Assembly: GCF_036588685.1 (NCBI RefSeq)
Contig: NC_086375.1
Location: 45,260,001 to 45,324,000, forward strand
From: Mytilus trossulus
Taxonomy: Eukaryota
DNA: 64,000 nucleotides
Direction: 5' to 3'
In this document: one piece after another, positions 7,181-62,118 of the stretch
Position numbering within the stretch: the stretch's first letter is position 1
Layout of the letters: every line of letters begins with the position of its first letter
Translations under genes and position numbers: made by a program
The notes under the pieces: generated by a model
What the model saw: only the letters and a program-made list of their open reading frames with translations
Told to the model about the DNA's origin: nothing
The model's database searches: none

Positions 7181-8478
7181 CTCATTACATCTTCTAAATC
7201 AAATATGATTTAGTTTTGATTTTTAAAAGAATCAGCAGTGCAACTATTTAGATGAATAGGTCCGGTAAATGCCGATTTTGGACTCAATTTTCAAGCTCAT
7301 CTAATAAAATATTTTAGCACTTTTTAAACACTTATGTGTCTATTTTGATTGATTCAACTAGTTTATGTGAAAATGTTTAACTGATTTAGTCATTTAAAAC
7401 GCTCCGATGCAAGCTTAATTAGGAAAAATCTATCAAATATGCAAAAAATCGTCACTTTTCAGATTGTTTTTGTCAAAAATGAAAGTGACCGCTGTAAGAT
7501 GACATATAAAAATGTATTCTTTGAACAGGAGGAAAAAGTAAAAATAAGAATGCATAAATTATATATGTTAAATTTGCATTAATTTCATTAATTTTGGCAC
7601 AATGCACATATAAATGAACACATCTTTTGAGCAGCTTATAAAATAGTATCTGTTCAATCTATATAAAACCCCAAGATAAGAATAAATCATAGTAGATATC
7701 ATTTGGATACAACCAAACATGTATCCAGGAAGTTCAGTTAAGTTAACTCCCAGTAAATGTGTCTAAAACAGTGGCTTAGATTCATTGAAAGCACTAAATC
7801 TAAACCATAAATATAATCTAGCTTGTATGTTCCTAAAAGCTCTCAATTCAAGAATGATTCAAGTAATACATCTTTTATAAAGATATATTTAGAAATAGGA
7901 GTATATTGTCTTTAAATATCAGCTGTCTTTATACAAGGCACAAAAAAACAGATGAAAGAAAAAAGACTATTAAAAATGTATTAGAATGTTTTTGAAAATG
8001 CCTGTACCAAGTCAGAAATATGACAGTTCTTGTCCATTTGTTTTTGATGCGTTTTGAAATTTGATTTTGCCATGTGATTATGGACTTTCCGAATTGATTT
8101 TCCTCTAAGTTCAGTATATTTATGATTTTACTTTTTTCTTATTAAATTTACTGTAAGAGTAAAACTTTGGTGACAACTGATCATTAAATAGGCAGTAATA
8201 GGCAATTGTTCGGTGTGAGCCAAGGCCCTGTGTTAAAGGCCGTATATTGACCTATAATGGTCTACTTTTTTTTAATTGTTATTTGGATGGAGAGTTGTCT
8301 CATTGGCACTCACACCACCTCTTTCTATATCTATATAATAAGACAAAAAGAAGAACATAGTAATGTCAATGTGTTGATTTTACTCTGCAGTATGCATCAT
8401 ATGCATGACAAAGATAAAATGTGTATGTTCATCAATGTTCTGCATGCCAAGTAAGCACATTCTCTTTGAAGTTGTTAT

Positions 8479-8525
8479 TTAAACAATCTTTGCCTCCATT
8501 ATTTCAGCCAAAGACTCTGTTTCAT
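8479..8525 (-). CDS. TIR-STING coding exon 11, terminal (DETESLAEIMEAKIV*)
   Basis: tttcag acceptor, correct phase, homologous to exon 6, TAA at 8481-8479. Confidence 0.82.
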
Positions 8526-10573
8526 CTGAAACATCAAAATAAAGGTACATTTGAGTTTATTCAAGGAAATAACTGAGGCTTCAAAAATATATGTTAATCC
8601 ATATGTTGTATTGTATATTGCATTTTTTTTTATTACATACTCAATTAATAAGTTTTCAAGGCTCAGATTTAAGTCCTATCCTCAATTTAAAAGTTATATA
8701 TAGATTTAAGTAGTTGGTATAAACAAATTAAAAGGTATACAAAAACATATTTAATACATTCTATTTCTGTTTGAACAATGATAAAGTAGGTCTTCTACAT
8801 TAAGCCTATACTTGGTCTTTATTTCCTCAATTTGCAATCCAGTTCTGCCATTAAACCTGTCTTAAATTTGGATAATAAAGTTGATTCTTCAGATAAACAT
8901 CACATATCAAACTTAAATTCTTATTATTTTGATAAATGAAATAGTTTCTCCTGTATTTTAAGTTTCTAACTCCCCAAAAAACATATCTCTTTTAAGCCAA
9001 AAGTCAATGGACAAAAACGGTTTTGCATTAAAATTAAACAAGAATGTGTCCCCAGTACACAGATATCCTCACTATCATTTTCTATGTTCAGTGGACCTTG
9101 AAAATGGGAAAAAAAATCTCTTATTTTGCAGTAAAATTTGAAAGATCATAGCATAGGGAACATGTGTACTAAGTTTTAGGTTGATTGGACTTCAGCTTCA
9201 TCAAAAACTACCTTGACCAAAAACTTTAACCTGAAGCGTGACGGATGAACAGACCAGAAAACATAATGCCCATAAATGAAGTATAAAAATATCAAAAGAC
9301 TGACTGTAAAACAGTGAACTTCTTATTTGTCAATTGTGCAAATCAATCTTACTGATATGTATAAAATGAATAGGAAAACTCACCATCAAAATAAACAAAT
9401 TCACAGCATTTGGCTTTTACAGGATCAGCTGACTCCATAAGATTCTTAACGATCTCATAAAAATTATATGCTTCTGATAAAATAGTGTCTGCAGTCACAC
9501 CTGCAATCCTCCATTCCTTCATCTCATGTAAACATGTAATAGGTGCAGCATATTGTCCAATAAAATATTTGTCCTGTAAAATATAATAAAATATTCGTAT
9601 ACTTAAACATGTGTATACCAACACTGAGAGAAAATGATTAAAGAAAATAAGAGGGAAAAAAAATAAATGCAAACAGCACTTTATAAATTTCATGCGACTG
9701 AAGATCTTTTCTGGATTGACCTTCATCTGGAATGATCAAAGTGGTGTTGTTTACAAAGGGAAAGAAGCATGGCATATGAGAATATGAATAAGTATGAAAA
9801 CAGACATACCGGCTGATCAGTAATTTTATATATTTGACAAGAAAATGGTCTGCTCCCACCAAAAGGATGAATATCAGGAGTAGTTGTAAAGTTAGAAATT
9901 CTGTCATTTTTGTCTTTCATCACACCTTTAGCATCACAACTCTTTGGTATAATTATAAACAGAGTTTCAGGACATTTATAATTGCTGATATCCATTTTTT
10001 TAAAAGACTGGTCAATATTTTTCAAAGCATCTGTAAAAAGAAGAAAATACTCAAAATCATCAAAGCATATCTTATCTGAAAATATGTATGTTCAACTTTC
10101 TCTATTTACTCTTATTTGAATTTGAAATAAGAAACACAAATGAAATGTGTTTTACATGTTAATGTCAAGGTAGATAAAAAGTTTTGAGTCAACCAAGAAC
10201 ATGTATAAAAGCCTTTGCATTAATCATAAGTCATACAAAGTGGGGACTACATGTACCACCCTTTAAATATACCAACAATACAATGAAATAAACAATAAAC
10301 AATAAAGTAAATATATTTATTCATAACAAAATATGCCACATGAACAATTTATCATGTCACTGCAAGCACTTGACAATTAATCTGACGGTCTTCATAAGAA
10401 AAATTCTGGCGTAAATTTTTTCCCTTTAAAATACAGAAAAAATACTTACATAAAGCGCACAAGAGTATAACACGCAGGGATAAAGACAAATAATCTCTCT
10501 TGTAAGATAAAAAATAAGATACAATCCATGAATATTCCTTTGTCATCAACAGTCACTCAGACTGACAAACTAT

Positions 10574-10632
<59 letters not shown>

Positions 10633-13600
10633 GTATATTAATGATCTTACCTGGTAGGATAATTCTTAGATAATTAACAACATAACCCCAGGCAAGTCCA
10701 TTGGCTACATCACCAGCAGGTAGTAACATTTCTGTTTTCAATGGAAAATCTTCTCCTAAAACAAAACCAATTGTTTACAGACCTATCAGAGTTATGTCCC
10801 TTTACAAATGGGAAAACAATCTGAAATACTTGTTTCTTTTCTTTAACTTTAGTTTGCCTCAACTAAATGGTATGAAAGTTTTACACAATGCTTTTTACCA
10901 CAAAACACAGATTAAGTTTGAAGTTTGGTGGCGTCACTTTTGTAAGACATAATAGTGTCCTGTGAAAAAGTGTCCACATGAACAGTTTTTCATTGAAGTT
11001 TGTAATTTGATAATGTCATGGAATGGTGTCCCTCTAAATCATTTCTGTCAGGACACTGTCAGGACATTGTCAGGACATCAGTGTAACCCATCACCACAAA
11101 ACAAATATCACGTTTGAAATTTAATGTCATCACTTTTACCATTCTAGAGTTAAGCTCCTTTATAAATGGAAACATATGTGAACTGTTTGTTTATATTCTC
11201 TGACTTTAGTTTGCCTAAACCAAATGTTATGTAACTTATACACAATTCAGAGATAAAGTTTGAAATTGGTGGCCTCCCTTTTATGTTCATGAGTTATGCC
11301 CCTTTACAAGTAAAACAAATAGGTATACAAATTACGTTTTTTCATTTATATAGTGTCCTGACCTTTTGATTTTTTATCATGACCTGATGAAGGATTATTA
11401 ACACTTTTAATATGTGTTGTTTGCACTGAAATTTGTGTTATACATTTATAACAAACAAAATAAACCAAAAAAAACAAACTAAAAAAAGGTTCTTTGATAA
11501 ATAACAGGCACTCACCACTGACAATATTGTGAAGACTTTTAAGATGAGATTTAGTTTGTTCATTAAAAGGTACATAAGTAACCCACTGTAGAGCATCAGG
11601 TATGTAGATATCATTCCGTCTATCTACCACAGGGATTACCCTTACCCTCCTTTTAAGGATACCATCATGGAGCGCAGCTAGTACCCTCAGTTGAAGCATC
11701 TTGTCCTTAACTGAATTCTTGGTCATCAGAAAAATGAACCATCTACAATTCTGCACAGCTTTAATAAGTGTATTAGACTTCACCTCTGGGTCATTTGGGC
11801 TGTCAGGATTTTTCAGGATACTGTGTATCCCCTTCTCTTCCAGATATTCAATAATTTCTTTAGCACTCTGTTTGTCTTCTTTGTCTTCAGAATGAGCTAT
11901 ATACACCTGATATTGGTATTTAAGTTCTGGTGTAGATTCCAAGTTTTCTAACTTAGGCCTGGTGATTGGGCTTTCCTGAAAATGATTAAGATATCCATAC
12001 TATCTATATGATGATTGTGGCCTTAGATGAAAGTGTTTTTAAATTATAGATACTGTACATTTTGAATTAAATCTTATAGAAATAGTAATAATGAAAGTAA
12101 AACACCATGGAACTAGAAACAACAAAAAGCCATCAGCCACAAAACATTTGTTCTCATCGCCTTATTTGATTCCACTTTGTATGAGCTATTGATGACTATT
12201 GCATTTCTTTTACAATTCAAATTAAGGTGTTAAAGGGGACAAAATCAAATTTTCAATCTGTTTACTGTGTCCTGTTCTATTATTGTGCCTGAACTTAGCT
12301 GTGTCAAGAACAATGGTGTGTATTTTTAGCCAAAATTCATAAATACCTAATCAATGTTTCAGTATGTTTGAGCAAGTAAACACTATTGTGCAGGGGAAAC
12401 AAGTTAAACTTTAATACAAACCTTTGGCATAACTTTTTCAGTTAATTGTAAATCTTGTTTTATTGCTTTTACTAAAACTTCAGACACTTTCTCAGTTTCA
12501 TCTGTAAAAAAAATTGATGATTTCATAATTATTTTTTTATGCCACATTACAGTTTACAAAACAAAAAATGTCTGTATTTTGCAGAGTCTGTTTAGACTGG
12601 TAAATTTAAGACAGGAGGTGATTTATATTAGGCAGGAATGGCTTGTTTTTTTATGTTGTATCACACACTAGATATATTGTAAATAGACACTTCATAGATG
12701 AAAAATATCTCTAGAAGTCTTTTGGTTATTTGTGTTACATGGGTTGCTGACTCATTTACAAAACTTTCCATTTTGAATTTTCCTTCCTCAGAGTTCAGTA
12801 TTTTTGTGATTTTACTTTTTACATATAACAAGTACCAGTACCACATATGATGCCAAGTCCCTTTTAATTTATATGATGTGCTCATCATGTATTATTACTA
12901 TTATCAATATCAAGACTACATTTTGTATTATAAATTTTCAATTTTTGTATATTACCATTGAAAAGAACAACTCTTGCTTTATTTCTAGATATATCAAAGT
13001 GGTTTATCACAGAGTTCATGGTATAGTAAAACCTTGCTAACTGTAACTTCTTGTCATCTATACTAAACTTTGCTAAATGGTGATCTTCCATTGCCTTCAT
13101 TGCTCCTATGGCACTTGGGTATTCACAAATACAGAAATATGTCTGAAAAGGTATTTGAAAAGCATGAATAAACACAATAAATCATATGAATAGTTCATTT
13201 CTTGTGAAACAATTATTCTCAAGATCTATAGAAAAAAAATTGTAGATTCTTAACCCTTCAGAAAACACTCAGACTATAATATTATAATATAACCACAATT
13301 TGAGAAATCTGAAAAATTGTTAAAATGCTCTGGTGGAGTGATGCCCCATTGGCATTCATATACTTATACCACATCTCTTTATCTTTAACTTATACTGATT
13401 TTTATAAAGTCATCTCTGCAATTGTGCATTGATTTTTTCAAATGGGTTAATAAATGAAAACGAAAACATTGGCAGGTTTTGCTAAATTCAACTACAATGT
13501 CTCATGCAAGTGCAAAATTATATATGCCCTTGTAAAAATTATTTGGACAGGAGCTCAAGGTTTCTAAACATAAACAATGAAATTATAACCAATACATGAT

Positions 13601-16600
13601 TTTCCAAAACTGGTGATATAGAAGGAAACAAACAACTATTAAAGCTCTTATAGATAGAGATTCAGATACCATACATATCTATTCACCTGATCACCATCAG
13701 TAATACTGTAAAGTTTGACAGCAAACTTTCTAACGTTTCCCCCTCTAATTGTATTGGAAAGTTCCAAATGTGTGATCAGTGTGATATTTTCATCTATTTT
13801 CGACAGATCAAAATGGCAAGTACATGATGTTGGTACCATTTCATAAAACTTTGTAGACACATGGTTCTGAAGGGAGTTTGATTGATACCAATCCGATTCT
13901 TTCAGTTTATTTTCCAAATCTGTAAAAAATAAACAAGTGATTAAACTGTACATGTCATATGCAGATAAATTTAAATCTTAAATAAATTATTCAAAGAAAA
14001 AATTGGTAAGACATGCTAAATAACCACAGATTTACAGTTGAAAAAAACTAAAATCAATAAACTGAATACAAGAACAAACTAGAGAATACTAAAAGATAAG
14101 CCATCATAGAGGGCCCCTAAGAAGTCCACAAATAACTTGTAATGTTTTTTTTTATCATAGCTCATAATAATGCAAAGCAGACATTCAAACCAAACAGCAA
14201 ATGGTTTTAATGCTAACATTTTGTTCATATGCACAGCAATGACTAAGTTGAACTAATGTTTTGTTCATGACTTTTTATGTTTTTTTTTTTTTTCCTTCCA
14301 CCTGACAGTCGAAAAAGTGGTGTGTACTCAGATGCACTTCTAGTAATTAACATCTTCAATGAAAAAAGATGAAAACAAGAATGTGTCCCCAGTACACAGA
14401 TGCCCCACTCGCACTATCATTTTCTATATTCAGTGGACCATGAAATTGGGGTCAGAACTCTAATATGATAAAATTAGAAAGATCATATCATAAGGAACAT
14501 GTATATTAAGTTTTAGGTTGATTGGACTTCAAGTTCATCAAAAACTACCTCGACCAAAAACTTTAACCTGAAGTGGGACGAACAGACGGACGAAACAAAA
14601 GGATGGACAAACAAACGCACAGACCAGAAAACATAATGCCAATAAATGGGGCATAAAAATAATATTAAAAAAGTATACCTGGTAGAATGTATTGAAGTAA
14701 TCCTGCATAATGTGACCATACCAGACCATGAGCTACATTTCCTGCAGGCATCAATTGTCTTATAGTCTCTTTTTCTGAAATAGGAAATAGCACATTTTTT
14801 ATACACAGATTTCTTAATCACTGTCTGTTCTGTCAAAAATTGCGAAACAAGGTTTACTATTTTAACCATAAAATAGAAGTATCAATATGTACTTAGGCTA
14901 GCTTAACTTTTACTTCTCATTTAAAAATATTTTGAAGTAAAATGGAAACAATTACAGCAATAGTACCCGTTTCTTTTTATGTTATGTCTAAGCTAAAAAG
15001 GTAAAGACACTATCAGCACTCTTGGTTACAATCCCAAGCCCATTTTTATTTGGTGATGGAAGTTGGAAGGTTCAGAGAGTTCATTGAAATTTGACGGGAA
15101 AACTAGTAAGCCTTGTCAATTAAAATCTGAGTCGAATACACATTGCCAAATGTTGGGTTTCAAGTTCTGTTGTTGCCATGTTGTTTTAGTTTTAATGCAT
15201 GTTTTTTATACACCTAGGTAATTTCACAAGGGGGCAGTTTTTGTCAACCCTAGTTCCCTACAGGCATGTGTATACATCTAAATGGTTTTAAAATAAATGT
15301 CCATCAAATGCTCATGTGGTTTTTAAAAAGTTAAAGACAGGAATGAATCCAGCAATTTTAAAAAGTAGATTTTGCAAAATTACATGGGGATAATGGAGAA
15401 GACTGCCTGAATCTTATTTTTGCAAATTTCTTAAGCTGTTAAAATGTTATTTTCTCAGTGGTGTTCAGTAAAGTTGTTTTCCATTTCATTGTCTTTCAAT
15501 TTTTTTGTCATGGCATTGTTATTTTCTCTTAAACGAGATTTTAATATCCCCTTGGCATCTTTCACCTCTTTTTCTGTATGACATACATCTACATGTATGA
15601 TAAAAGGAGATGAGGGATATGTGTCAATAAAACAACAATCCAACAAGATTAAGATTTTTTTTCTTTGCGTTGTTTATATGGATTTTTAATTTTGCAAACT
15701 GTCTACACTTACAAGTACTGTAAATTGTGTCTTTTGTATAAACTAAATCAATATACCTCTTATCCTTTCAATGGTTTCAGTTACCCAAGAATCATTTTCT
15801 TTTGTAAACACAATTTTTCTAGCTTCTTGTAATACTGCAATTTGTGGAATCTATAAACATGATAAAGAAAATAAAAAATATTAACTATGACAATTATATA
15901 ATGACCTGTCACCAAGAAACTAACAGAGTACATTTGCGTAAGTTGGTTTTATATGACGAGGACATAATTTTTCAATCAGTTAAAGGTGGTACCTAACACT
16001 ACAGGGAGATAACTCTGTAAAATCAGCTAAACATTTTAACTACGTTGTGTTGTTAAGGGAATAGTAAGCTTCTCAATGATCACAATCAGTGTTTGTCAAA
16101 CTGCTATATAACCAGTGTCATTTTTCTGATAAAATGTTTGGTTCAAATTTTTTGAAAGTTTTATATTTTTGTCAAATGGTCAAAGTAAATACTTTGTCAA
16201 AATTTTATGAAAATTAAACGAGCCAAATTAATTTTAGTCAAAGTGTTAGGTATCACCTTAATTGAGTTCTGGAGCTGGCATTTCAGTAACTGCTAGTAGT
16301 CCTTTGTTTATGTATGTATCATTTTCATTGTGCTTAGTTTCTTTTGTTGCCTGTTTTGAAATCAAACTCTTCTTTTAAACTGCATTTTACTGTGCTTATT
16401 TCTGTGTGTTTATTTATTCTTAGTACATTTGCTAGAGGTATAGGGAGAGGGTTGAGATCTCACCAAACATATTTACCTTAACCTCGCCACAATTTTGTGC
16501 CTGTCCCAAGTCAGAAGCCTCTGGACTTTGATGGTTTTGTATGTTTTTAAATTATAGTTTATTTATATGTTAAAGAGTTTAGTATGACGATCATTTTCAC

Positions 16601-17526
16601 TGAACTAGTACACATTTTTATTTAGGGGTTAGCTGAGGTTCACCTATGGATGTGGGATTTTCTTGCTGAATTGGAGATCCATTGGTGGCCTTCAGCTGTT
16701 ATCTGCTATTTGGTCAGGTTGTTGTCTTTTTGACAAATTCTCCATTTCCATTTCCATTTTATTTAAAGTAATGTGCTTGTCTCATGTGCATCTTATGGCT
16801 GGGCTCTAGTCCTAGCCAGGTCAAAGGCTTGAAAATTAGACTTTGATGCTTCCCTGTTAAGCAAATGTCTGAACTTATGAGTTAAAACATCCATGGTCAG
16901 CTCAGAGTTTAAATAAAGAATTTGTACCATCATGATTTTAATCATGTCATCTTTTATAAAAAAAAAAATAGAATGAATTGGTGCGAACTTATCTTAATTT
17001 TTGAAAATGTTTAAGATCCTGAAAAATCCATGATCTTAGATTTAAGATTATTCAGATTTATAAGGAACATTGTTATCTTTTCTTCAATACACAAAATATG
17101 CCTGTGCCACACAATTTTGTATAGTAAGTATCAAGAATTTTTATTCCATCTGAATAAATGAAGGGTTGAGTTAAGTGTTAAAAATACAACAACAAAACAA
17201 ATACATACATCTTTCTCTTCTATACCATGTAGTAAAAGAACTACTGAAAGCTGCTGCTTCCTTTGTGATCTCTCTAGACCTATTAGTAGTTCTAGATTGC
17301 ACCAGCTACTTTGCATGGCATTCTTAGTGATGAATAGAAGTGTCTTATCAACTTTATCCACCAATTCTGTTAAACTAGACAGAAAAATTTGTCCTGGTTG
17401 TAATTCATCTTGGGTAAGGATGCTTATGTCTTTAAACACTTCCAATTTTGGAAGGATTTCATCAAATACCAGTTGTTGATCATCAAGTTCATTACTGTGA
17501 GAAAGGAATACTTTTATGGTAGTCAT
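8479..17526 (-). CDS. STING1: Tandem TIR-STING-TIR-STING protein (soluble STING-family cyclic dinucleotide receptor), 11 coding exons, 2031 nt, 676 aa
   Basis: Manual splicing: 17526-17209, 15850-15757, 14774-14679, 13919-13687, 13142-12956, 12501-12422, 11975-11516, 10755-10651, 10030-9810, 9573-9384, 8525-8479. All introns are GT-AG with compatible phases and there are no internal stops. STING signatures occur twice: GNVAHGLVWSHYAGLLQYILP and GDVANGLAWGYVVNYLRIILP (human [20 protein letters not shown]); CEYPSAI and GQYAAPI (human LEYATPL). Two TIR domains begin VFLSHS and VYIAHS. The symbol indicates family, not proven orthology. Confidence 0.92.
9038..9290 (+). mobile_element. HINE/pearl-like non-autonomous element (intronic)
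   Basis: AACAAGAATGTGTCCCCAGTACAC start, GACG-type microsatellite, 3' hairpin remnant; paralogous to 14375-14659. Confidence 0.7.
9384..9573 (-). CDS. TIR-STING coding exon 10: STING domain 2 (DKYFIGQYAAPITCLHEM...CCEFVYFD)
   Basis: QYAAPITCLHEM corresponds to human EYATPLQTLFAM; tttacag and GTGAGT splice sites. Confidence 0.9.
9810..10030 (-). CDS. TIR-STING coding exon 9: STING domain 2 core and lid (DALKNIDQ...LFIIIPKSC...FGGSRPFSCQIYKITDQP)
   Basis: LFIIIPKSC corresponds to human LYILLPLDC; ttttacag and GTATGT splice sites. Confidence 0.9.
10576..10629. repeat. (TC)27 microsatellite about 20 nt from the exon 8 donor
   Basis: Perfect dinucleotide run. Confidence 0.98.
10651..10755 (-). 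CDS. TIR-STING coding exon 8: STING domain 2 dimerisation helix (EDFPLKTEMLLPAGDVANGLAWGYVVNYLRIILP)
   Basis: STING signature; ttttag and GTAAGA splice sites; absent from the ORF track on this strand. Confidence 0.93.
11516..11975 (-). CDS. TIR-STING coding exon 7: linker and TIR domain 2
   Basis: YQVYIAHSEDKEDK...AVQNCRWFIFLMTKNS...RVIPV...IPDALQWVTYVPF TIR pattern; ttttcag and GTGAGT splice sites. Confidence 0.9.
12422..12501 (-). CDS. TIR-STING coding exon 6: last helix of STING domain 1 and linker (DETEKVSEVLVKAIKQDLQLTEKVMPK)
   Basis: ttttacag and GTTTGT splice sites, phase 1->0; resembles human SLSQEVLRHLRQE; paralogous to exon 11 (DETESLAEI). Confidence 0.85.
12956..13142 (-). CDS. 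TIR-STING coding exon 5: STING domain 1 (TYFCICEYPSAI...LQLARFYYTMNSVI...KARVVLFN)
   Basis: Aligns to human CVLEYATPL...[21 protein letters not shown]...CRLIAY; canonical splice sites. Confidence 0.9.
13687..13919 (-). CDS. TIR-STING coding exon 4: STING domain 1 core and lid (DLENKLKES...IRGGNVRKFAVKLYSITDGDQ)
   Basis: Aligns by eye to human VSQRLYILLPLDC...DPNI...RAGIKDRVYSNSIYEL; ttttacag and GTGAAT splice sites. Confidence 0.9.
14375..14659 (+). mobile_element. HINE/pearl-like non-autonomous element (intronic)
   Basis: Same family as 9038-9290; GACG/GACA repeats; ends ATGCC...GGGCATAAAAA. Confidence 0.7.
14679..14774 (-). CDS. TIR-STING coding exon 3: STING domain 1 dimerisation helix (KETIRQLMPAGNVAHGLVWSHYAGLLQYILP)
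   Basis: Close match to the STING [11 protein letters not shown] motif; tttcag and GTATAC splice sites. Confidence 0.93.
15757..15850 (-). CDS. TIR-STING coding exon 2: end of TIR1 (IPQIAVLQEARKIVFTKENDSWVTETIERIR)
   Basis: tttatag acceptor, GTATAT donor; phase 0->1 bridges exons 1 and 3; resembles the TIR C-terminal region. Confidence 0.85.
15985..16257. mobile_element. MITE in a TIR-STING intron
   Basis: TIRs GGTGGTACCTAACAC / GTGTTAGGTATCACC in a T(T/A)AA context. Confidence 0.75.
16470..16762 (+). repeat. Interspersed repeat; other copies at ~17950-18205 and ~41120-41280
   Basis: Shared cctgtcccaa...cactgaactagtacaca...tctctttgacacattccccatttccatt. Confidence 0.75.
17209..17526 (-). 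CDS. TIR-STING coding exon 1: TIR domain 1 (MTTIKVFLSHS...SSWCNLEL...GIEEKD)
   Basis: TIR box1 VFLSHS, BB-loop-like DELQPG, WCxxEL; acceptor tttcag at 17535-17534 just upstream of the ATG, donor GTATGT at 17208. Confidence 0.9.
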
Positions 17527-20500
17527 TCTTTTCCTGAAACAAATTTTAAAAGTGTATTAACTATCTTTTGTGGTGTTTGGGGCATTTCATCATACCTTAT
17601 AGGTACAGTCATGACAAGATGCTGATCCTTTACTTTGAAAGAAAATGGGGGCTGCCAGTCTTAAAACTAGATAAATTTTGAGTATTTGAAGTACAATCAG
17701 TAAAAATTCTAGATACCATAAATGAAGCCTTAAGGGGAGCACCCGGCCCCCTAAATTCACCCCAGCAAACTGTGTAGTATAAAATTAGATTATTATCACT
17801 TTTAATACAGGTATTATGACAGGGAAGCTTATTTGAAGAATTCATAAACATTTGATGTTTCAATTTTAAAAAGGATAAATTAAAAATTACAAATGTTATA
17901 GATGTATATTAATTATATCAATAAACCTGTTTATTACCCGCTCTAATTTTGCACCTGTCCCAAATCATGAGTCTCCGGACTTTGTTAGTCTTGTATGGTT
18001 TTTAATTTTAGATAATTTATATCTTTTAGATTTCAGTATGAAACCATTTTCACTGAACTAGTACACATTTTTGCTTAAACATGTTAAAGGCAAGTTGAAG
18101 CCTGCTCCGGGTGCCAGATTTTCTCACTGTGATGAAGACCCATTGATTGCCTTCAGTTATTGTTGTTGTCTCTTTGACACATTCCCCATTTCCATTTTCA
18201 ATTTTACTAGTAATACATGTATGTGATATATTGTAAATAAAAACCAGACTACCTTTGATCATTAATTTTCTCATAGATGTAATATAATTATTATTTCATT
18301 TCATATATTATATTAAAACAATGTACCAGTAAGGTTTTTTTTACTGTTTATCAACTTCTTAAATTTATAGCTTGAAAAGTTAAAATGATGTTTTCCAAAT
18401 TGTCACTTATCTAAATAATCTTTCATTTGAGGATGTTTAGAAGAATGCGATCATGAATCGCTTTTAGGCTCTGAAAAAAAAACGAAGTAAAAAAAGGGGG
18501 AGGTGAAATACAAAACCAGAATGTGTGAAATGAGCAACCAACTCACCACTGCAGACAGTGCAATGAGCTAAATATTATCTTGTTGTTCTTGTGTCTGTAT
18601 GATGTATCATTGTCATTGATCTATATATAAACTTAAAAATATCAGTTGTAGTCATGTCATAAATTGCAATGGTATAAATGTGGCTTTCATTTGTCATCAT
18701 AATGATTTTGCCTTGTTGGTAAGGCTTCACTAACTGGATTTCTCTCAAGACAAAGTTGTAATCTGCCAGACAGATTATACGCCCAGATGAAAGTGAAAGT
18801 AAGGTCTGGTTACTTTCGAAATGTAAGTTCAACAGGACACCAGTTGTAAGATGCTGACAGCCTTCCGGACTTTCCCGAAGTCCTTCGTATAACACCGCGG
18901 TCGACCTATGGTTACTGGTAAACAAAAAAAACTGATGATAACTGCGGAGCTCAACTGCGAAAAGGCACTAGACAGTTAAAACTAAATCTAATATTCACCT
19001 ACAAGTCGAGTAATTCCTTTAAATTGATTTCTTTGTGTTGATAATTTATATTTTCCTACTTTTCAAAAGCAAATTATTAAAATTACCCTCCTATTTACCT
19101 AGGATTAAAAAAAATTGTATAGTAAGTATACAATTTTTTTTTAATCCTTGTATTAACAAAGCCGACGAAAGAATGCGACAATTTTTTTTTTAATCCTTGT
19201 ATTTACAAAGCCGAAGAAAGAATGCGACAAAATAACAAATAAACGATATTGTCGACGCCGGCAAATTGAAATTGGCAAAAAATACCGTATTTCCTGAAAT
19301 ATTTTCCGGCCGTCGCTGCACTGATTATATGTCCTGCCAAAAATTATCAAAATTTCAGATTCAATAGTTTCAATGATAGTGATTTTACAAATTTAAAATA
19401 CAAGTACCATTCTATTCATAATTATGAGAGAAAAATCCACGACAATGCCAAGCAATATGGCAATTGCTTTACAAATATTCTATCGTTTGACAGCTTTAAT
19501 AAAAATAGTTATTTTTAAAATAAGAGCTGGGGAAATGATGGCATATTTTCTAGTTTACAGGCGCAGGAAAAATAGCCACTGCTCTATCAAATCGTACCAA
19601 ATCGATAAAACATGCTCATCATGTTTGTCTTGAAGTTGTCGCCATTTGTTACCCAATCTAGGAAGTAATTAAGTAGCTTATTTTTTTTTCTCTCTCAGTT
19701 TTTCATGACTACTTCACTTGTTTTTCCAACTTGTTTTTCTACTCTACTAGACTAAACCTGTCCACGAGATAAGTAGTACTCAGTATTGTCAAAAGGTTTA
19801 ACTGCTGATGTTATACCGAGACCGTTCGATTTAAATTCTACTTTCAAGAGCAACCCGAGTTAATAAAATCGAAGTCGACCAAACGGATTGATTTCCTGGC
19901 AAGTTTATGAACTTCGGTCCCTGCTTTGAAGTATTGATTGTTTTCTGTGGAACAGTGCGACAGCTATCATTTCAAAATAATTTTAGAGTGGGTTCTAATA
20001 AGGATTTGTGGTCATTTGTACATTTCTATACAAATCCTTGTTTCCAGAGCTATTCATAATCACCTTCTGATATTTAAAATTTGTTATATGAACATTTATC
20101 TAGACAGGAGAAACAGTCTAATACAGTTTTATGAATATCTGTTAAAATTAATTATATCATAGGTTGCGACAAACAATTTATTATATTAATAATTGTTTTG
20201 TTTTTTTAATTATTTATTTTTTAAAACTCACCGATAACCACACAATTATATTCCTTTAACGGTGGTTTATAATGTTCACATATGACCTATACTAGTATTT
20301 AACTCCGAAATGATCCGGGAAACCAGGCTATCATGGATTTTCGATTTCCAAAAAATTGTACATATAGTTGCCAAAAACTTTAGACAAACGAAACAAAACT
20401 AAGTTAATCTGAAGTACTGTTTTATATTTTCGGCCAAAACGTAAACAACTTCGATAAAACAATATATCTGGAAGTTTTTTTTAATTTTGTCTTCTGCATG

Positions 20501-49398: not shown

Positions 49399-51421
49399 AT
49401 GCGGATAACTGCAATTATTAATCATTTACTTGTATCAACTTTCTTATGTGTCAAGACAGATTCCGATGTGGCCTTGTCTTATGTGTGTACATTCAATATA
49501 CATTGCCGCTGCTATAATAAAGTAGGAACAGAAAACTTTCCACCGAATACTTACATTTTAAATCTGCAAAATAACCGTATACGCGTAATAAGCGATACCG
49601 CATTTCATTCTTTATCGAATCTGTCAATCTTGGATTTATCATACAACAAAATCAAAGGTATAAAGTTACACTCTTTTGGTGGATTAGGAAAACTGAAGGA
49701 GTTAAACTTGAATTACAATCCTTTAGATTATACAAAATTTCCAAACGAAGGTTTCATCCCATTGGTATCCCTTCGACGTCTTTGCATTAAAAGTAAAATT
49801 TTCATGGCAGCTGTTAGTTCTATTTTCTCAGATAAAACGATATCACATTTGAAGTCACTGGAGAAGTTGGAAATAGATGTTCTGATCAATGCACAAATCT
49901 TCGAGTATATGCCACTTTTAACACGTATTTCATTTGACGAAAAGTGTAAGATTCATATCACACCTGGTGGACATCGAAGTTTGAAAAACATCAAAGAATT
50001 TTACGTTCATCGTTTAGTTGACACGCTACTTCCATATCTTAATAACTTTACAAATGAATTGAGGCTGACTCCAGTCGAAACATTGTCATTTCAAAACACT
50101 TTTGCAGAGGGTTTTGAAGACCGTTACTATCCATGGAATCCGATAAGCAGAAATTTGCAGAACTCGTCTTTAAAAGAACTGCTGATGACTGAAAATAAAC
50201 TTGGAGAAAGTTTTCCAGTATCTAAACTCGATCCTCCTCCTTCAAGTTTACAAGTGCTGAAACTTTCCAGCAATATACTCGAAAAGTTTTCGTTAGATTT
50301 AGGGAATATTCGAAATCTCAGTCTACAAAATAATTATCTAGGAGGATTTCTAAGTACTCATAGTTATAAAATGTCGAAAGAATCTAGCAGTCTTGAGTAC
50401 ATAGATTTATCAGCGAATAGTATTGAAATGCTTACATTCATATTATTTAAGGGCCAACCAAAATTAAAATATATCAATCTTAGTCATAATAAGTTGCAAA
50501 AGATTACATTTGATGTTTCTCGATTGAATGATCTTCATTATTTAGATTTATCAAGAAACAATTTCACGACATTAGACGAAAAGGCTATGGCAATGTTCGA
50601 TGGTCTGTCTAAAAGTACTTTTTTTACACTTAATTTACAAAATAATGCAATGCAATGTACCTGTAACACACTGCCGTTCTTAAAGTGGATTTCAAAAACG
50701 AAAGTTGATTTGCTGCTTAACGAAAAGTGTAATTTAGAAGATGGGACCGTTGTAAGTTTCAATCCAATAGATCCAATAATACAGCAACTACAGAAAAAAT
50801 GCAGTACATATACGTACTTAATAATTGCTTTGTCTGTAGGGTTGGTTGTTATCTTAACCATTCTTTTTTTTTGCTTTAGTGTATAAATACAGATGGAAAC
50901 TTCGATACATGTTTTATCTTGCAAAAAGTAAACACTACAATTACAAGGCTTCCATAGACAACGGGGAATACACTTACGATGCTTTTATCTCGTACTGTGA
51001 TGATGATAGAACATTTGTATTAAAAGATTGCATTGCAAATTTAGAAACTGAAGGGAACGCTAAATTATGCGTGCACCAACGAGATTTCCTACCAGGCCAA
51101 GAGATAACAGTCAATATTACAAACGCCATCCATGAAAGCAGAAAGACAGTTTGCATTATAACGAGAAAGTTTTTTGAGTCTTATTACTGTATGTTTGAAT
51201 TTAATATGGCCCGGATGGAAAACATTTATTCTCGGGATGGAAGAAATATCATTTTCCTAGTATTTCTCAAGCAAATTCAACCAAAAGAAATGCCACTTAT
51301 GATGCTCGAACTTATAGAGAAACAGTCTTACATTGAATATCCAAATGACGAAAAAGGGAATGTTGTGTTCTGGGAAAAAATAAAAGAAGCTATTCATTCA
51401 CGACATTTGTTGCAAAACTGA
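49399..51421 (+). pseudogene. Toll-like receptor copy A; one +1 frameshift in a T9 run (50864-50872) within the TM helix; 673 aa if corrected (may be an assembly error)
   Basis: Signal peptide, LRRs, LRRCT (NAMQCTC) and TM in 49399-50886; TIR (YDAFISY, RDFLPG, FW) in the next frame 50879-51421. Removing one T restores colinearity with copy C. Confidence 0.88.
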
Positions 51422-59967: not shown

Positions 59968-62118
59968 ATGCTGATAAATGCAATTGTTAATTTTCTATTT
60001 GTGTCAACTTGCCTTAGTGTTAAAATGGATGCCGATTTAAAATTATCCTCCGTGTGTATTTTTAATACTCAGTGCCGGTGCTCAAATGCGACAGGAACAT
60101 CGCAATTACATGTTGATTGTGCGAACGGTAAACTAACAGAAATTCCCAAAGTTCCACGAAATGTTTACATTTTAAACCTGCAACATAACTGTATATTGGA
60201 AATAGAGGACAACGTATTTCAAAGTTTAACGAATCTATACATGTTGGATTTATCAGATAATAAGATTAATCTTTTGAAATTACACTCTTTTAAGGGATTG
60301 AGAGAACTCAAAGTATTAAACTTAAATGACAATCCAATAGCGTATGAAATGTTTCCAAACGGTGTTTTTATCCCGTTAGTCTCTCTTAAACATCTGTGCA
60401 TTAAAAGTACAACTAAAAAGGTTAGTAAAAGTACAAAAGTGATCTCGGATCAAGCAATATCAGACTTGAAGACATTGGAGAAATTGGAATTAGACGTTCC
60501 TATACAATCCGCCACACATATTATATTTGGAGACGGATATAAATATTTAAAGCATCTTATTTCTCTCAATATCGGAAGATGTTATTATCCAGTATACATT
60601 GATGAAAAAACTTTCCAGTTTCTTCCACATTTGACAAACATTTCTTTTGACAATCAGTGTGATATGTTTATCATCTCGGGTGGACACCAAAGTCTACAAA
60701 GCACAAGACAACTTTACGTGCACCGTTTAGTAAACAATTTGGTACAAGATTTACTACAGTTTGATAGTCTGACAAAGGAGCTGAAACTGACACCAATAGA
60801 AACTTTGTCATTTGAAAACACCTTTTCGTGTAGTTTTGAATATTATCCATGGAATCCAATAAGTTTAAATTTAAACATCTCGTCTCTAAAGAATCTGAGA
60901 ATGACCGACAATAGACTTGGTGAAAGCTTTCCACCGTCTAAACTTTATCCACCTCCTCCAAGTTTACAAGAACTGAATCTTTCCAGTAATAAACTCGAGA
61001 AGTTTGCGTTAGATTTAGAGAATATTCGAAATCTAAGTCTACAAAATAATTATCTAGGAAGATTTCTAAGTACTCGCAGTTATAAAATGTCAAAACAATC
61101 TAGCAGGCTAGAGTTCATAGATTTGTCGATGAATGGTATTGAAAATCTAACATTTGTATTATTCAAGGGACAGCCAAATTTAAAATATATCAATCTGAAT
61201 GATAACAAGCTGCAAAAGGTTACTTTTGATGTTTCTCAATTGAAAAGTCTTCGGTATTTGGATTTATCAAGCAATAATTTTACGACATTAGACGAGAAAG
61301 CTATGGCAATGTTCGATGGCCTGTCTAAAATTACCCATTTCACAGTTAATTTACAAAAAAATGCATTGCGATGTACCTGCAACACACTGCCGTTTTTAAA
61401 GTGGATTTTCAAAACGAAAGTTGATTTGCTGCTTAACGAAAAGTGTAATTTAGAAGATGGGACTGGTTTTAGTTTCTACCCAATAAACTCATTAATACAG
61501 CAAGTACAGAATGGATGTACGTCATATACAACCTTAGTCATAGCGTTGTCTGTAGGCTTGGCAGTCATGTTGACCGTTATTGTTTTGGCTTTAGTGTATA
61601 AATACAGATGGAAACTTCGATACATGTTTTACCTTGCCAAAAGGAAACACTACAATTACAAGGCTTCCATAGACAACGGGGAATACACGTACGATGCTTT
61701 TATCTCGTATTGTGATGATGATAGAGCATTTGTATTACAAGATTGCATTGCAAACTTAGAAACTGAAGGGAATGCTAAATTATGCGTGCACCAACGAGAC
61801 TTCCTACCAGGCCAAGAGATAACAGTCAATATTACAAACGCTATACATGACAGCAGAAAGACGGTTTGCATAATAACAAGAAAGTTTTTTGAGTCTTACT
61901 ATTGTATGTTTGAATTCAACATGGCCCGAATGGAAAACATTTATTCTCGGGATGGACGAAATATTATTTTTCTAGTATTTCTAGAGCAAATTCAACCAAA
62001 AGAAATGCCACTTATGATGCTTGAACTTATAGAGAAACAGTCTTACATCGAATATCCCAATGACGAAGAAGGAAATATTGTGTTCTGGGATAAAATTCAA
62101 GAAGCTATTCATTCATGA
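59968..62118 (+). CDS. Toll-like receptor copy C, intact, 716 aa (single-cysteine-cluster type)
   Basis: Signal peptide, LRRNT (C-x5-CRC...C), LxxLxLxxN repeats, LRRCT NALRCTC, TM LVIALSVGLAVMLTVIVLALVY, TIR with box1 YDAFISY, BB loop RDFLPG and box3 FW. Confidence 0.96.
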   Translation: MLINAIVNFLFVSTCLSVKMDADLKLSSVCIFNTQCRCSNATGTSQLHVDCANGKLTEIPKVPRNVYILNLQHNCILEIEDNVFQSLTNLYMLDLSDNKINLLKLHSFKGLRELKVLNLNDNPIAYEMFPNGVFIPLVSLKHLCIKSTTKKVSKSTKVISDQAISDLKTLEKLELDVPIQSATHIIFGDGYKYLKHLISLNIGRCYYPVYIDEKTFQFLPHLTNISFDNQCDMFIISGGHQSLQSTRQLYVHRLVNNLVQDLLQFDSLTKELKLTPIETLSFENTFSCSFEYYPWNPISLNLNISSLKNLRMTDNRLGESFPPSKLYPPPPSLQELNLSSNKLEKFALDLENIRNLSLQNNYLGRFLSTRSYKMSKQSSRLEFIDLSMNGIENLTFVLFKGQPNLKYINLNDNKLQKVTFDVSQLKSLRYLDLSSNNFTTLDEKAMAMFDGLSKITHFTVNLQKNALRCTCNTLPFLKWIFKTKVDLLLNEKCNLEDGTGFSFYPINSLIQQVQNGCTSYTTLVIALSVGLAVMLTVIVLALVYKYRWKLRYMFYLAKRKHYNYKASIDNGEYTYDAFISYCDDDRAFVLQDCIANLETEGNAKLCVHQRDFLPGQEITVNITNAIHDSRKTVCIITRKFFESYYCMFEFNMARMENIYSRDGRNIIFLVFLEQIQPKEMPLMMLELIEKQSYIEYPNDEEGNIVFWDKIQEAIHS

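Follow-up and report, generated by a model that had tools for sequence, protein, structure and literature searches.

A double-unit TIR-STING gene of Mytilus trossulus and its place in an old bivalve family

The window analysed here (the whole stretch of DNA, 64,000 nt of Mytilus trossulus contig NC_086375.1) contains an intact and transcribed gene; it is a Mytilus representative of a family of double-unit TIR-STING proteins that is old in bivalves. One mRNA was shown to encode a soluble chain of 676 aa, composed of TIR1, STING1, a linker, TIR2 and STING2, using contigs that are assembled pieces and do not prove a single molecule from exon 1 (E1) to exon 11 (E11). The design is already known from a paper on oyster and from the annotation of several bivalves; the new part is only the plausible idea that the two halves pair within one chain.

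Gene model and domain order

The coding region was modelled as 11 minus-strand exons (17526..8479), with GT..AG ends and a pyrimidine tract at every intron, consistent phases and no internal stop in any exon. By exon arithmetic the spliced ORF totals 2031 nt (676 codons plus TAA at 8479-8481), which reproduces exactly the 11-exon, 676-aa ORF of the initial annotation. Pfam and other sequence searches were run exon by exon. Pfam on the exon ORFs returned TIR, STING_LBD, TIR and STING_LBD in this order on one strand, confirming the architecture proposed earlier. With the cut-off at 27 bits, single STING exon pieces scored 16-31 bits, and rough bit sums came to ~80 for unit 1 and ~55 for unit 2.

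The coding part of E1 (17209..17526, minus strand as for all exons below; donor GTATGT) encodes TIR1 from strand A to helix C with its W..LE motif (Pfam TIR_2 1.5e-9, TIR 2.2e-7), and E2 (15757..15850; AG/GT sites, phase 0 to 1) encodes the C-terminal part of TIR1. E1 and E2 are 96% and 94% identical to residues 18-126 and 126-156, respectively, of the Mytilus edulis ortholog CAG2217974.1 (P0001), in which the E1|E2|E3 joins read straight through. Helix alpha1 of STING1, the dimerisation helix, is encoded by E3 (14679..14774), which matches STING_LBD profile positions 1-22 and aligns ungapped with human STING residues 154-173, with Leu at the human Tyr167 position. The core sheet and lid of STING1 follow in E4 (13687..13919; STING_LBD 1.8e-7, profile 19-99), which was aligned to PDB STING chains and has the Arg232 and Arg238 equivalents, and the 'CEYPS' strand and further helices in E5 (12956..13142; STING_LBD 1e-6, profile 97-164). 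E6 (12422..12501) holds the last STING1 helix and begins the inter-unit linker with 11 residues. A PDB search with E3 also returned TAL-effector matches, falling on 'ET.Q.L.P....AHGL'; these were sums of ~20 weak repeats, each below 3.5 bits, and were treated as chance.

The remaining ~19 aa of the linker, which is ~30 aa long overall, and the entire TIR2 are encoded by E7 (11516..11975; Pfam TIR_2 1.2e-10). E8 (10651..10755; STING_LBD profile 1-21) encodes helix alpha1 of STING2; in alignments with oyster 6WT6 and with residues 154-173 of human STING, a Tyr stands opposite human Tyr167, and position 166 is Asn. E9 (9810..10030; profile 21-116) encodes the core sheet and lid of STING2, including the Arg238 equivalent, and is collinear with the relatives P0003, P0060 and P0008. 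E10 (9384..9573; profile 99-160) encodes the 'GQYAAP' strand and helices and is 57-60% identical to P0003 and P0060. E11 (8479..8525) encodes the final helix of STING2 and ends with the TAA stop (8479-8481). E6 and E11 are parallel, with identical phase and a 'DETE..' start; the phase and 'DETE.SL' start of E11 are also those of the family consensus. An ATTAAA lies 202 nt downstream of the stop.

The earlier claims that the protein has neither a transmembrane (TM) segment nor a C-terminal tail both held. The maximum 19-residue Kyte-Doolittle window in any exon was 1.01, giving no TM-like stretch, and the N-terminal four-helix TM domain of canonical TM-STING (TMEM173) is absent from the chain. 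The stop lies 14 residues past the conserved 'YFDD', likewise in relatives, leaving no tail with a pLxIS/TBK1 motif, and LxIS is absent from all exons.

A further, non-coding exon was placed upstream, so that the gene has at least 12 exons. Its 3' part was set at 19003..19052 on the minus strand, with the donor GT at 19002-19001. By tblastn, 19040..19002 matches a 19-aa N-terminal extension of P0001 at 85% identity; the corresponding frame of the window lacks an ATG and is interrupted by an in-frame TAG. The upstream exon leaves a split codon, TT|G, that is compatible with an acceptor 9 nt before the ATG, placing the beginning of exon 1 itself at 17535, and the ORF start is 17526 despite the extra exon. 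One transcript contig (X1 record 7) extends 795 nt upstream of E4, ~287 nt beyond what E1-E3 account for. Additional coding exons or TM helices upstream were excluded: the exon homologous to the M. edulis extension contains a stop and lacks a start codon, and no coding-looking ORF was found upstream.

Transcription and the joint between the units

Transcript contigs of four runs from four studies, presumed to be RNA, were mapped to a 6-kb stretch. Five of the ten junctions called for RNA confirmation in the initial annotation were found in all four runs: E4-E5 (13142 to 13687), E5-E6 (12501 to 12956), E6-E7 (11974 to 12421), E7-E8 (10754 to 11515) and E8-E9 (10030 to 10651); E1-E2, E2-E3 and E3-E4 lie outside the mapped stretch, and the list of joints did not extend to E9-E10 or E10-E11. 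Contig pieces end at 9810 (E9) and span 9384/9386-9572 (E10), and E11 is covered in run X6 only, by contig 24 with 97 letters past 9384. In contig coverage, exon bins were 5-30 times deeper than intron bins.

The E6-E7 joint connects both units and bears on whether there is one gene or two. Two adjacent TIR-STING genes could have been mis-fused by the splicing model, the first ending in or after E6 and the second starting in E7. Single-unit TIR-STING genes are known in bivalves (PMC11103948), and read-through at the exon 6 donor would reach a stop after five further codons. Against this, the E6-E7 joint is present in all four runs at a depth similar to that of the flanking joints, the reading phase is continuous across it, the E6-E7 gap is just 446 nt, and both the M. 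edulis model and every paralog cross the same join. Strand A of TIR2 is not preceded by any ATG in exon 7, so that a separate second gene would lack a start codon before its TIR core, and two separate genes are therefore very unlikely; we consider a mis-fusion scarcely credible. The single gene proposed earlier thus stands.

The E6-E7 splice occurs in two sequence forms, one agreeing with the window and the other with a second, diverged copy in the genome. A joint from 11961 to 12421, skipping 13 nt more and with non-canonical ends, was considered as a frameshifted isoform stopping after unit 1. It was rejected: exactly at this place, where its exon 7 begins, the second genomic copy carries SNPs and a deletion of 3 nt, as does the M. 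edulis ortholog. Transcripts of either would align with ~10 unaligned letters and keep the frame, and the second copy thus explains the joint.

Bivalve relatives and the second genomic copy

The gene had been presented as hidden, which was not borne out: the M. edulis ortholog is annotated (as 'MITA'), as are many relatives. The M. edulis model is faulty, with part of exon 7 and exons 9-10 skipped and 19 N-terminal residues added. Proteins of 660-750 aa with two TIR and two STING_LBD domains were found in Mytilus, Crassostrea, Tegillarca, Dreissena and Sinanodonta, and at least 15 cluster representatives of this length match at residues ~320-510. By tblastn, P0001, P0003, P0008, P0010, P0017 and P0060 map in order onto E1-E10, and E11 agrees with the family C-terminal consensus. 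Complete double-unit ORFs were also present on single Logan contigs of 2.3-3.5 kb. The statement that duplicated TIR-STING forms were already known in bivalves is thus upheld by these database relatives and by a 2024 paper that lists oyster STINGs in which both domains, STING and TIR, occur twice (PMC11103948).

The present protein resembles the known double-unit proteins in domain order, length class, collinear exons and unit-specific motifs, with 'GLVWSHY.G' and 'EYP' in unit 1 and 'GLAWGY..NY' and 'GQYAAP' in unit 2; these proteins also have no TM segment and no tail (PMC11103948). There is no difference in kind, the present unit 1 having Leu at the Tyr167 position. The STING domains fall into a unit 1 group and a unit 2 group, separated with 100/98 support, and the duplication is therefore old.

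The second copy is collinear, lies ~100 kb away and has 69-98% DNA identity. With the unit 1 Leu at the Tyr167 equivalent, this could be taken to mean that the gene is a decaying, non-functional duplicate, one of two diverged cluster copies whose unit 1 is losing its ligand site. Such decay is very improbable, since the ORF is intact across 11 exons and transcribed, and Leu or Phe at unit 1 position 167 is common across the family, which makes it a family trait.

Unlike units and the proposed pairing of the STING domains

The two units differ from each other in a consistent way, at the STING pocket as well as at the TIR motif, as read from aligned sequences of 19 family members. Human residue numbers used here follow established knowledge and PDB chain ranges. 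At position 167, unit 2 has Tyr in 18/19 members, and unit 1 has Tyr in 7, Leu in 6 and Phe in 4; the Arg238 equivalent is kept in 18/19 and 16/19 members. In the present gene, unit 1 has Leu167, Arg232, Arg238 and Glu260, and unit 2 has Tyr167, Arg238 and Gln260, with Arg232 not clear. The full human contact set (Tyr167, Arg238, Arg232 and Glu260/Thr263) is found in neither unit alone but in both combined. The W..LE glutamate was counted in 16/19 TIR1 and 2/19 TIR2 domains; here TIR1 has it ('SSWCNLEL') and TIR2 has Arg in its place. This glutamate is also found in non-enzymatic TLR TIR domains and is necessary but not sufficient for NADase activity, and therefore does not by itself show such activity.

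Among solved structures, the single-unit oyster TIR-STING (6WT6/6WT7) is the best PDB sequence match of the alpha1 exons and the top Foldseek match of a modelled relative. It likewise joins an N-terminal TIR to a STING LBD of metazoan type in a soluble chain, and differs in having one unit per chain, an intermolecular homodimer and a symmetric pocket, whereas the present chain has two diverged units joined by the linker. Human and Nematostella TM-STING share the LBD fold (Z 20-21.5, rmsd ~2 Å, for a modelled relative), and vertebrate and cnidarian TM-STINGs share the conserved alpha1 helix and Arg238 equivalent; unlike these, the present protein has TIR domains in place of the four-helix TM domain and pLxIS tail. 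The bacterial CBASS TIR-STING (SfSTING) likewise has TIR and STING in one soluble chain and suggests, as a working model, that ligand drives the TIR domains to cluster (PMC9402430); both kinds of domain are of animal type in the present protein. Pfam prok_STING matches in relatives were weak and below cut-off, and independent origins have been argued for animal and bacterial TIR-STING fusions (PMC10732462).

AlphaFold2 models of two four-domain relatives, ~50% and ~33% identical to this protein, had pTM values of 0.67 (P0003) and 0.75 (P0010), with the inter-unit linker as the sole long disordered stretch; the better model was that of a 693-aa oyster relative. In a modelled relative, both units superposed on solved STING LBDs (Z 20-21.5, rmsd 1.7-2.4 Å), and the 6WT6/6WT7 protomer fitted the model with an rmsd of 11.5-12 Å; Foldseek and VIA-align compare single chains, and these values report on folds, not on pairing. 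The high pTM could also reflect other packings, or the tendency of AlphaFold to pack repeated domains. A literature search found no paper on pairing within a double TIR-STING chain.

The intramolecular pseudo-dimer suggested in the initial annotation is plausible, being consistent with the high pTM of the modelled relatives and the conserved asymmetry of the units. In this mechanism, the STING1 and STING2 LBDs would most likely pair via their alpha1 helices inside one chain and form one asymmetric cyclic-dinucleotide pocket, with the canonical stacking Tyr contributed by unit 2 and the Arg238-type phosphate contact by both units. Bound ligand would reposition or oligomerise the TIR domains, and the output would be TIR-based, through adaptor recruitment or NAD+ cleavage. 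The one ground for placing signalling through TIR and not TBK1-IRF is the missing TBK1/IRF3 tail. Weighing against the shared pocket, unit 1 of this protein has Leu at the stacking position. Taken as a whole, a double-unit chain with intrachain STING pairing and TIR output is the best explanation and appears probable, by a modest measure.

Pairing could also take place between chains, the chain itself being real. It could be homotypic (STING1:STING1' and STING2:STING2', with two symmetric pockets per dimer of chains) or head-to-tail, STING1 binding STING2 of the next chain, so that open-ended polymers would form and bring the TIR domains into clusters. All solved STINGs are intermolecular dimers, including the single-unit oyster 6WT6/6WT7, bacterial TIR-STING signals via filaments (PMC9402430), the alpha1 helix and Arg238 equivalent are kept in both units, and the rmsd to 6WT6/6WT7 indicates that the modelled TIR-STING geometry differs from the crystal. 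Weighing against interchain pairing, the stacking Tyr is missing from unit 1 of this protein and many members, which would weaken a homotypic unit 1 pocket; the divergence of the units predates the separation of the sampled bivalve lineages and has persisted, as expected of obligate partners; and the high pTM of the monomer models suggests a self-contained assembly. We regard interchain pairing as rather unlikely.

Returning to intrachain pairing, a more specific form of it is put forward tentatively, as a possibility that is less likely than not: an obligatorily asymmetric covalent pseudo-dimer. Unit 2 would provide the stacking-Tyr half-site and unit 1 a derived half-site (Arg232, Ser162 and Glu260 equivalents), so that one chain might read one asymmetric cyclic dinucleotide (e.g. 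2'-5'/3'-5') in a fixed orientation. A glutamate-bearing TIR1 would then lie beside a glutamate-less TIR2, and the built-in ligand polarity would be conserved across bivalves.

The gene alone adds little, being one more correctly modelled copy that mends the poor M. edulis model. Its possible importance lies in the family, in which two anciently diverged units differ consistently and for which AlphaFold predicts, in the relatives modelled, that the four domains pack into one body. If the intrachain pocket is real, these proteins would be natural single-chain STINGs with a non-symmetric ligand site and would offer a good setting in which to study the recognition of asymmetric cyclic dinucleotides by STING. 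They could also help to reveal the output of animal TIR-STING fusions, which has been called unclear in the oyster papers (PMC10732462).

Gene model and 5′ end

The window (contig C3, 45.26-45.32 Mb, within the 1.30-Gb assembly) is AT-rich eukaryotic DNA with a GC of about 0.31. Eight stop-free ORF pieces on its minus strand, from 17526 to 8479, matched Pfam profiles in the order TIR_2, three STING_LBD pieces, TIR_2, three STING_LBD pieces. The unit 1 TIR piece (TIR_2, 1.5e-9) was followed by three successive STING_LBD pieces (profile 1-22, 19-99 and 97-164), and the unit 2 TIR piece (TIR_2, 1.2e-10) by three more (1-21, 21-116 and 99-160), in agreement with the two TIR+STING units of the initial annotation. 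Inspection of the sequence around each piece showed canonical splice sites, with pyrimidine tracts at the AG acceptors and GT at the donors, and exon-by-exon arithmetic gave 11 exons of 2031 nt (676 codons and TAA) with consistent phases and no internal stops, reproducing the annotated 11-exon, 676-codon model exactly. The STING parts of both units had identical intron positions and phases and a common layout (alpha1 exon, phase 1; core exon; 'EYP/QYAAP' exon; short final exon opening 'DETE'); TIR1 was interrupted by one intron and TIR2 was uninterrupted. Examined exon by exon, the gene showed no LxIS motif and no hydrophobic window of TM type (maximum 1.01); its product ends 14 residues past the conserved 'YFDD'. 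As had been described, it has neither a TM segment nor a C-terminal tail.

The Mytilus edulis ortholog (P0001, CAG2217974.1, 'MITA', 536 aa) was 96% identical over exon 1. Its public model is faulty: 22 residues are missing inside TIR2 (part of exon 7), and exon 8 is joined directly to exon 11, so that exons 9-10 are dropped with the frame intact and STING2 is lost. The model starts at an upstream ATG absent from the M. trossulus genome and carries 19 additional N-terminal residues, the window homolog of which (19040..19002) ends at a GT donor. Because this stretch holds an in-frame TAG and no ATG, it is a 5′UTR exon, with the ORF beginning at 17526; an acceptor lies 9 nt upstream of that ATG.

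Gene copies and transcripts

At least four double TIR-STING genes were found in the genome. One of them is a second copy of the window gene, collinear with it and about 100 kb distant (C3:45156000-45169000). Two adjacent stretches of C3 that hold this copy were joined end to end for blastn, and DNA identity was 69-98% over exons and introns. The copy, which also appears to be transcribed, represents either a segmental duplicate that has diverged or a haplotype left uncollapsed. A paralog resembling P0060, a Logan transcript protein (81-87% identical), starts about 16 kb downstream of the gene's stop on the same strand; its first unit was observed in C3:45240000-45252316, and the second would fall below that stretch. 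A divergent copy lies at C3:71.76-71.78 Mb. The window also holds two tandem single-exon Toll-like receptor genes (LRR-TM-TIR) at 59968-62118 (+) and 49399-51421 (+). The downstream one has an intact 716-aa ORF, and the upstream one, broken into 495-aa and 180-aa ORFs near the TM segment, is either frameshifted or a pseudogene.

Transcript evidence was taken from Logan contigs of four runs (four studies, two organisms) on 8100-14099. The runs were presumed to be RNA, and exon bins were 5-30x deeper than intron bins, an RNA-like pattern. Of the 10 joints proposed for an RNA check, 5 were recovered in all four runs at similar depths: E4-E5 (13142->13687), E5-E6 (12501->12956), E6-E7 (11974->12421), E7-E8 (10754->11515) and E8-E9 (10030->10651). 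Joints E1-E2, E2-E3 and E3-E4 lie beyond the 6-kb stretch covered; for these, the evidence was a 1057-nt contig running 795 nt upstream of E4 and the M. edulis protein, which is continuous there. E9-E10 and E10-E11 were absent from the listed joints; contig pieces nevertheless stop at exon borders, and a contig of run X6 had 97 letters past 9384, matching a small depth over exon 11. Exon 7 opens in phase 0 directly after a TTTCAG acceptor and has no ATG upstream of the first TIR2 strand, the earliest in-frame ATG lying inside the domain. With the E6-E7 joint in 4/4 runs, one gene encoding a single chain is well supported, from contigs that join the exons piecewise and not E1-E11 in one molecule.

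A second E6-E7 joint (11961->12421) was also recovered. A frameshifting isoform was set aside, since exon 7 of the second copy differs exactly there (two SNPs and a 3-nt deletion at its start); the M. edulis ortholog has a matching one-residue deletion, and both joints are therefore better explained as one in-frame splice carried by two copies or alleles.

A (GA)n microsatellite (10569-10639) lies directly past the exon 8 donor in intron 8, where the contigs are cut. Very high-copy interspersed repeats occupy the 3′ flank and introns (8100-8499, 8900-9299, 10700-11299 and 12700-12899; summed contig depth up to about 187,000). A joint going back 166 (9235->9070), present in all runs, is suggestive of a repeat unit that is tandem or rearranged. 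One element occurs twice, at 9022-9245 (intron 10) and 14377-14662 (intron 3); both occurrences contain the ORF fragment 'HYVFWSV...RFRLKFLV.VVFDE.EVQST' and match a single place in the second copy of the gene.

Bivalve relatives and divergence of the units

A search with exon 7 alone in a set of 1.84 billion representative proteins gave 59 matches, at least 15 of them of 660-750 aa and aligned at residues about 320-510; of ten matches scanned with Pfam, most had two stretches each of TIR and STING_LBD. Relatives included M. coruscus CAC5401079.1 ('TMEM173', 700 aa), M. galloprovincialis XP_076084553.1 (696 aa), C. gigas XP_034329245.1 (693 aa; cluster of 56, including C. angulata XP_052702960.1) and proteins of Tegillarca granosa, Dreissena polymorpha and Sinanodonta woodiana. 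All relatives' proteins were collinear with the 11 exons. Many members of the C. gigas cluster are full ORFs on single 2.3-3.5 kb Logan contigs; whole double-unit mRNAs therefore exist. Ylistrum balloti P0006 (XP_060080375.1, 1422 aa), with four STING_LBD and no fewer than three TIR stretches, represents either one chain of four units or a pair of double-unit genes that annotation has merged. The architecture is already published and annotated, and the gene, called hidden in the initial annotation, is a member of a known family.

Maximum-likelihood analysis of 38 STING units, drawn from 19 double-unit proteins, separated units 1 and 2 with support of 100/98; the unit duplication is therefore older than the divergence of the bivalve lineages sampled. 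Pocket positions were numbered as in human STING from PDB chain ranges and established knowledge, and over the same 19 proteins the units differed in a fixed fashion. Position 167 was Y7/L6/F4 in unit 1 (Leu in the window gene) and Tyr in 18/19 in unit 2; position 166 was Gly (15) against Asn (19/19), and position 163 His (14) against Tyr (17). Arg238 was retained in 18/19 and 16/19, respectively; an Arg232 equivalent was present in unit 1 (R11/H6) and none was seen in unit 2. At positions 262-264, unit 1 had Pro262 (19/19) and unit 2 Pro264 (16/19). The W..LE glutamate was found in 16/19 TIR1 and only 2/19 TIR2 domains (Arg in TIR2 of the window gene). This residue is required by NADase TIRs and also occurs in non-enzymatic TLR TIRs, and is therefore no proof of enzyme activity.

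Structure models and pairing of the units

Structures were predicted for two full-length relatives in place of the window protein, each from an alignment of 19 sequences: M. coruscus P0003 (pLDDT 73.8, pTM 0.67) and the C. gigas-type P0010 (pLDDT 80.6, pTM 0.75). For chains of ~700 residues and four domains, these pTM values mean that most residues are predicted to lie in one confidently arranged body. The sole long stretch below pLDDT 50 in P0010 was the inter-unit linker (352-369); long low-confidence stretches in P0003 were the linker (356-375) and one STING1 loop (278-297). Both modelled units superposed on solved STING ligand-binding domains (Z 20-21.5, rmsd 1.7-2.4 Å, about 175 residues). 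The oyster TIR-STING protomer 6WT6/6WT7, which has one unit, superposed at an rmsd of about 12 Å only, and the modelled TIR-STING geometry of the double-unit relative is thus unlike that of the crystal.

The pairing of STING1 with STING2 within one chain, suggested in the initial annotation, is plausible and given roughly even chances. A homotypic unit-1 pocket would often be without the stacking Tyr at position 167, and this, like the relatives' models, fits an intrachain pair; the units may instead pair between chains, either homotypically or in head-to-tail polymers. A literature search found no paper on how the two units pair. The gene itself is already known in kind, and only the way in which its two units pair merits experimental work.
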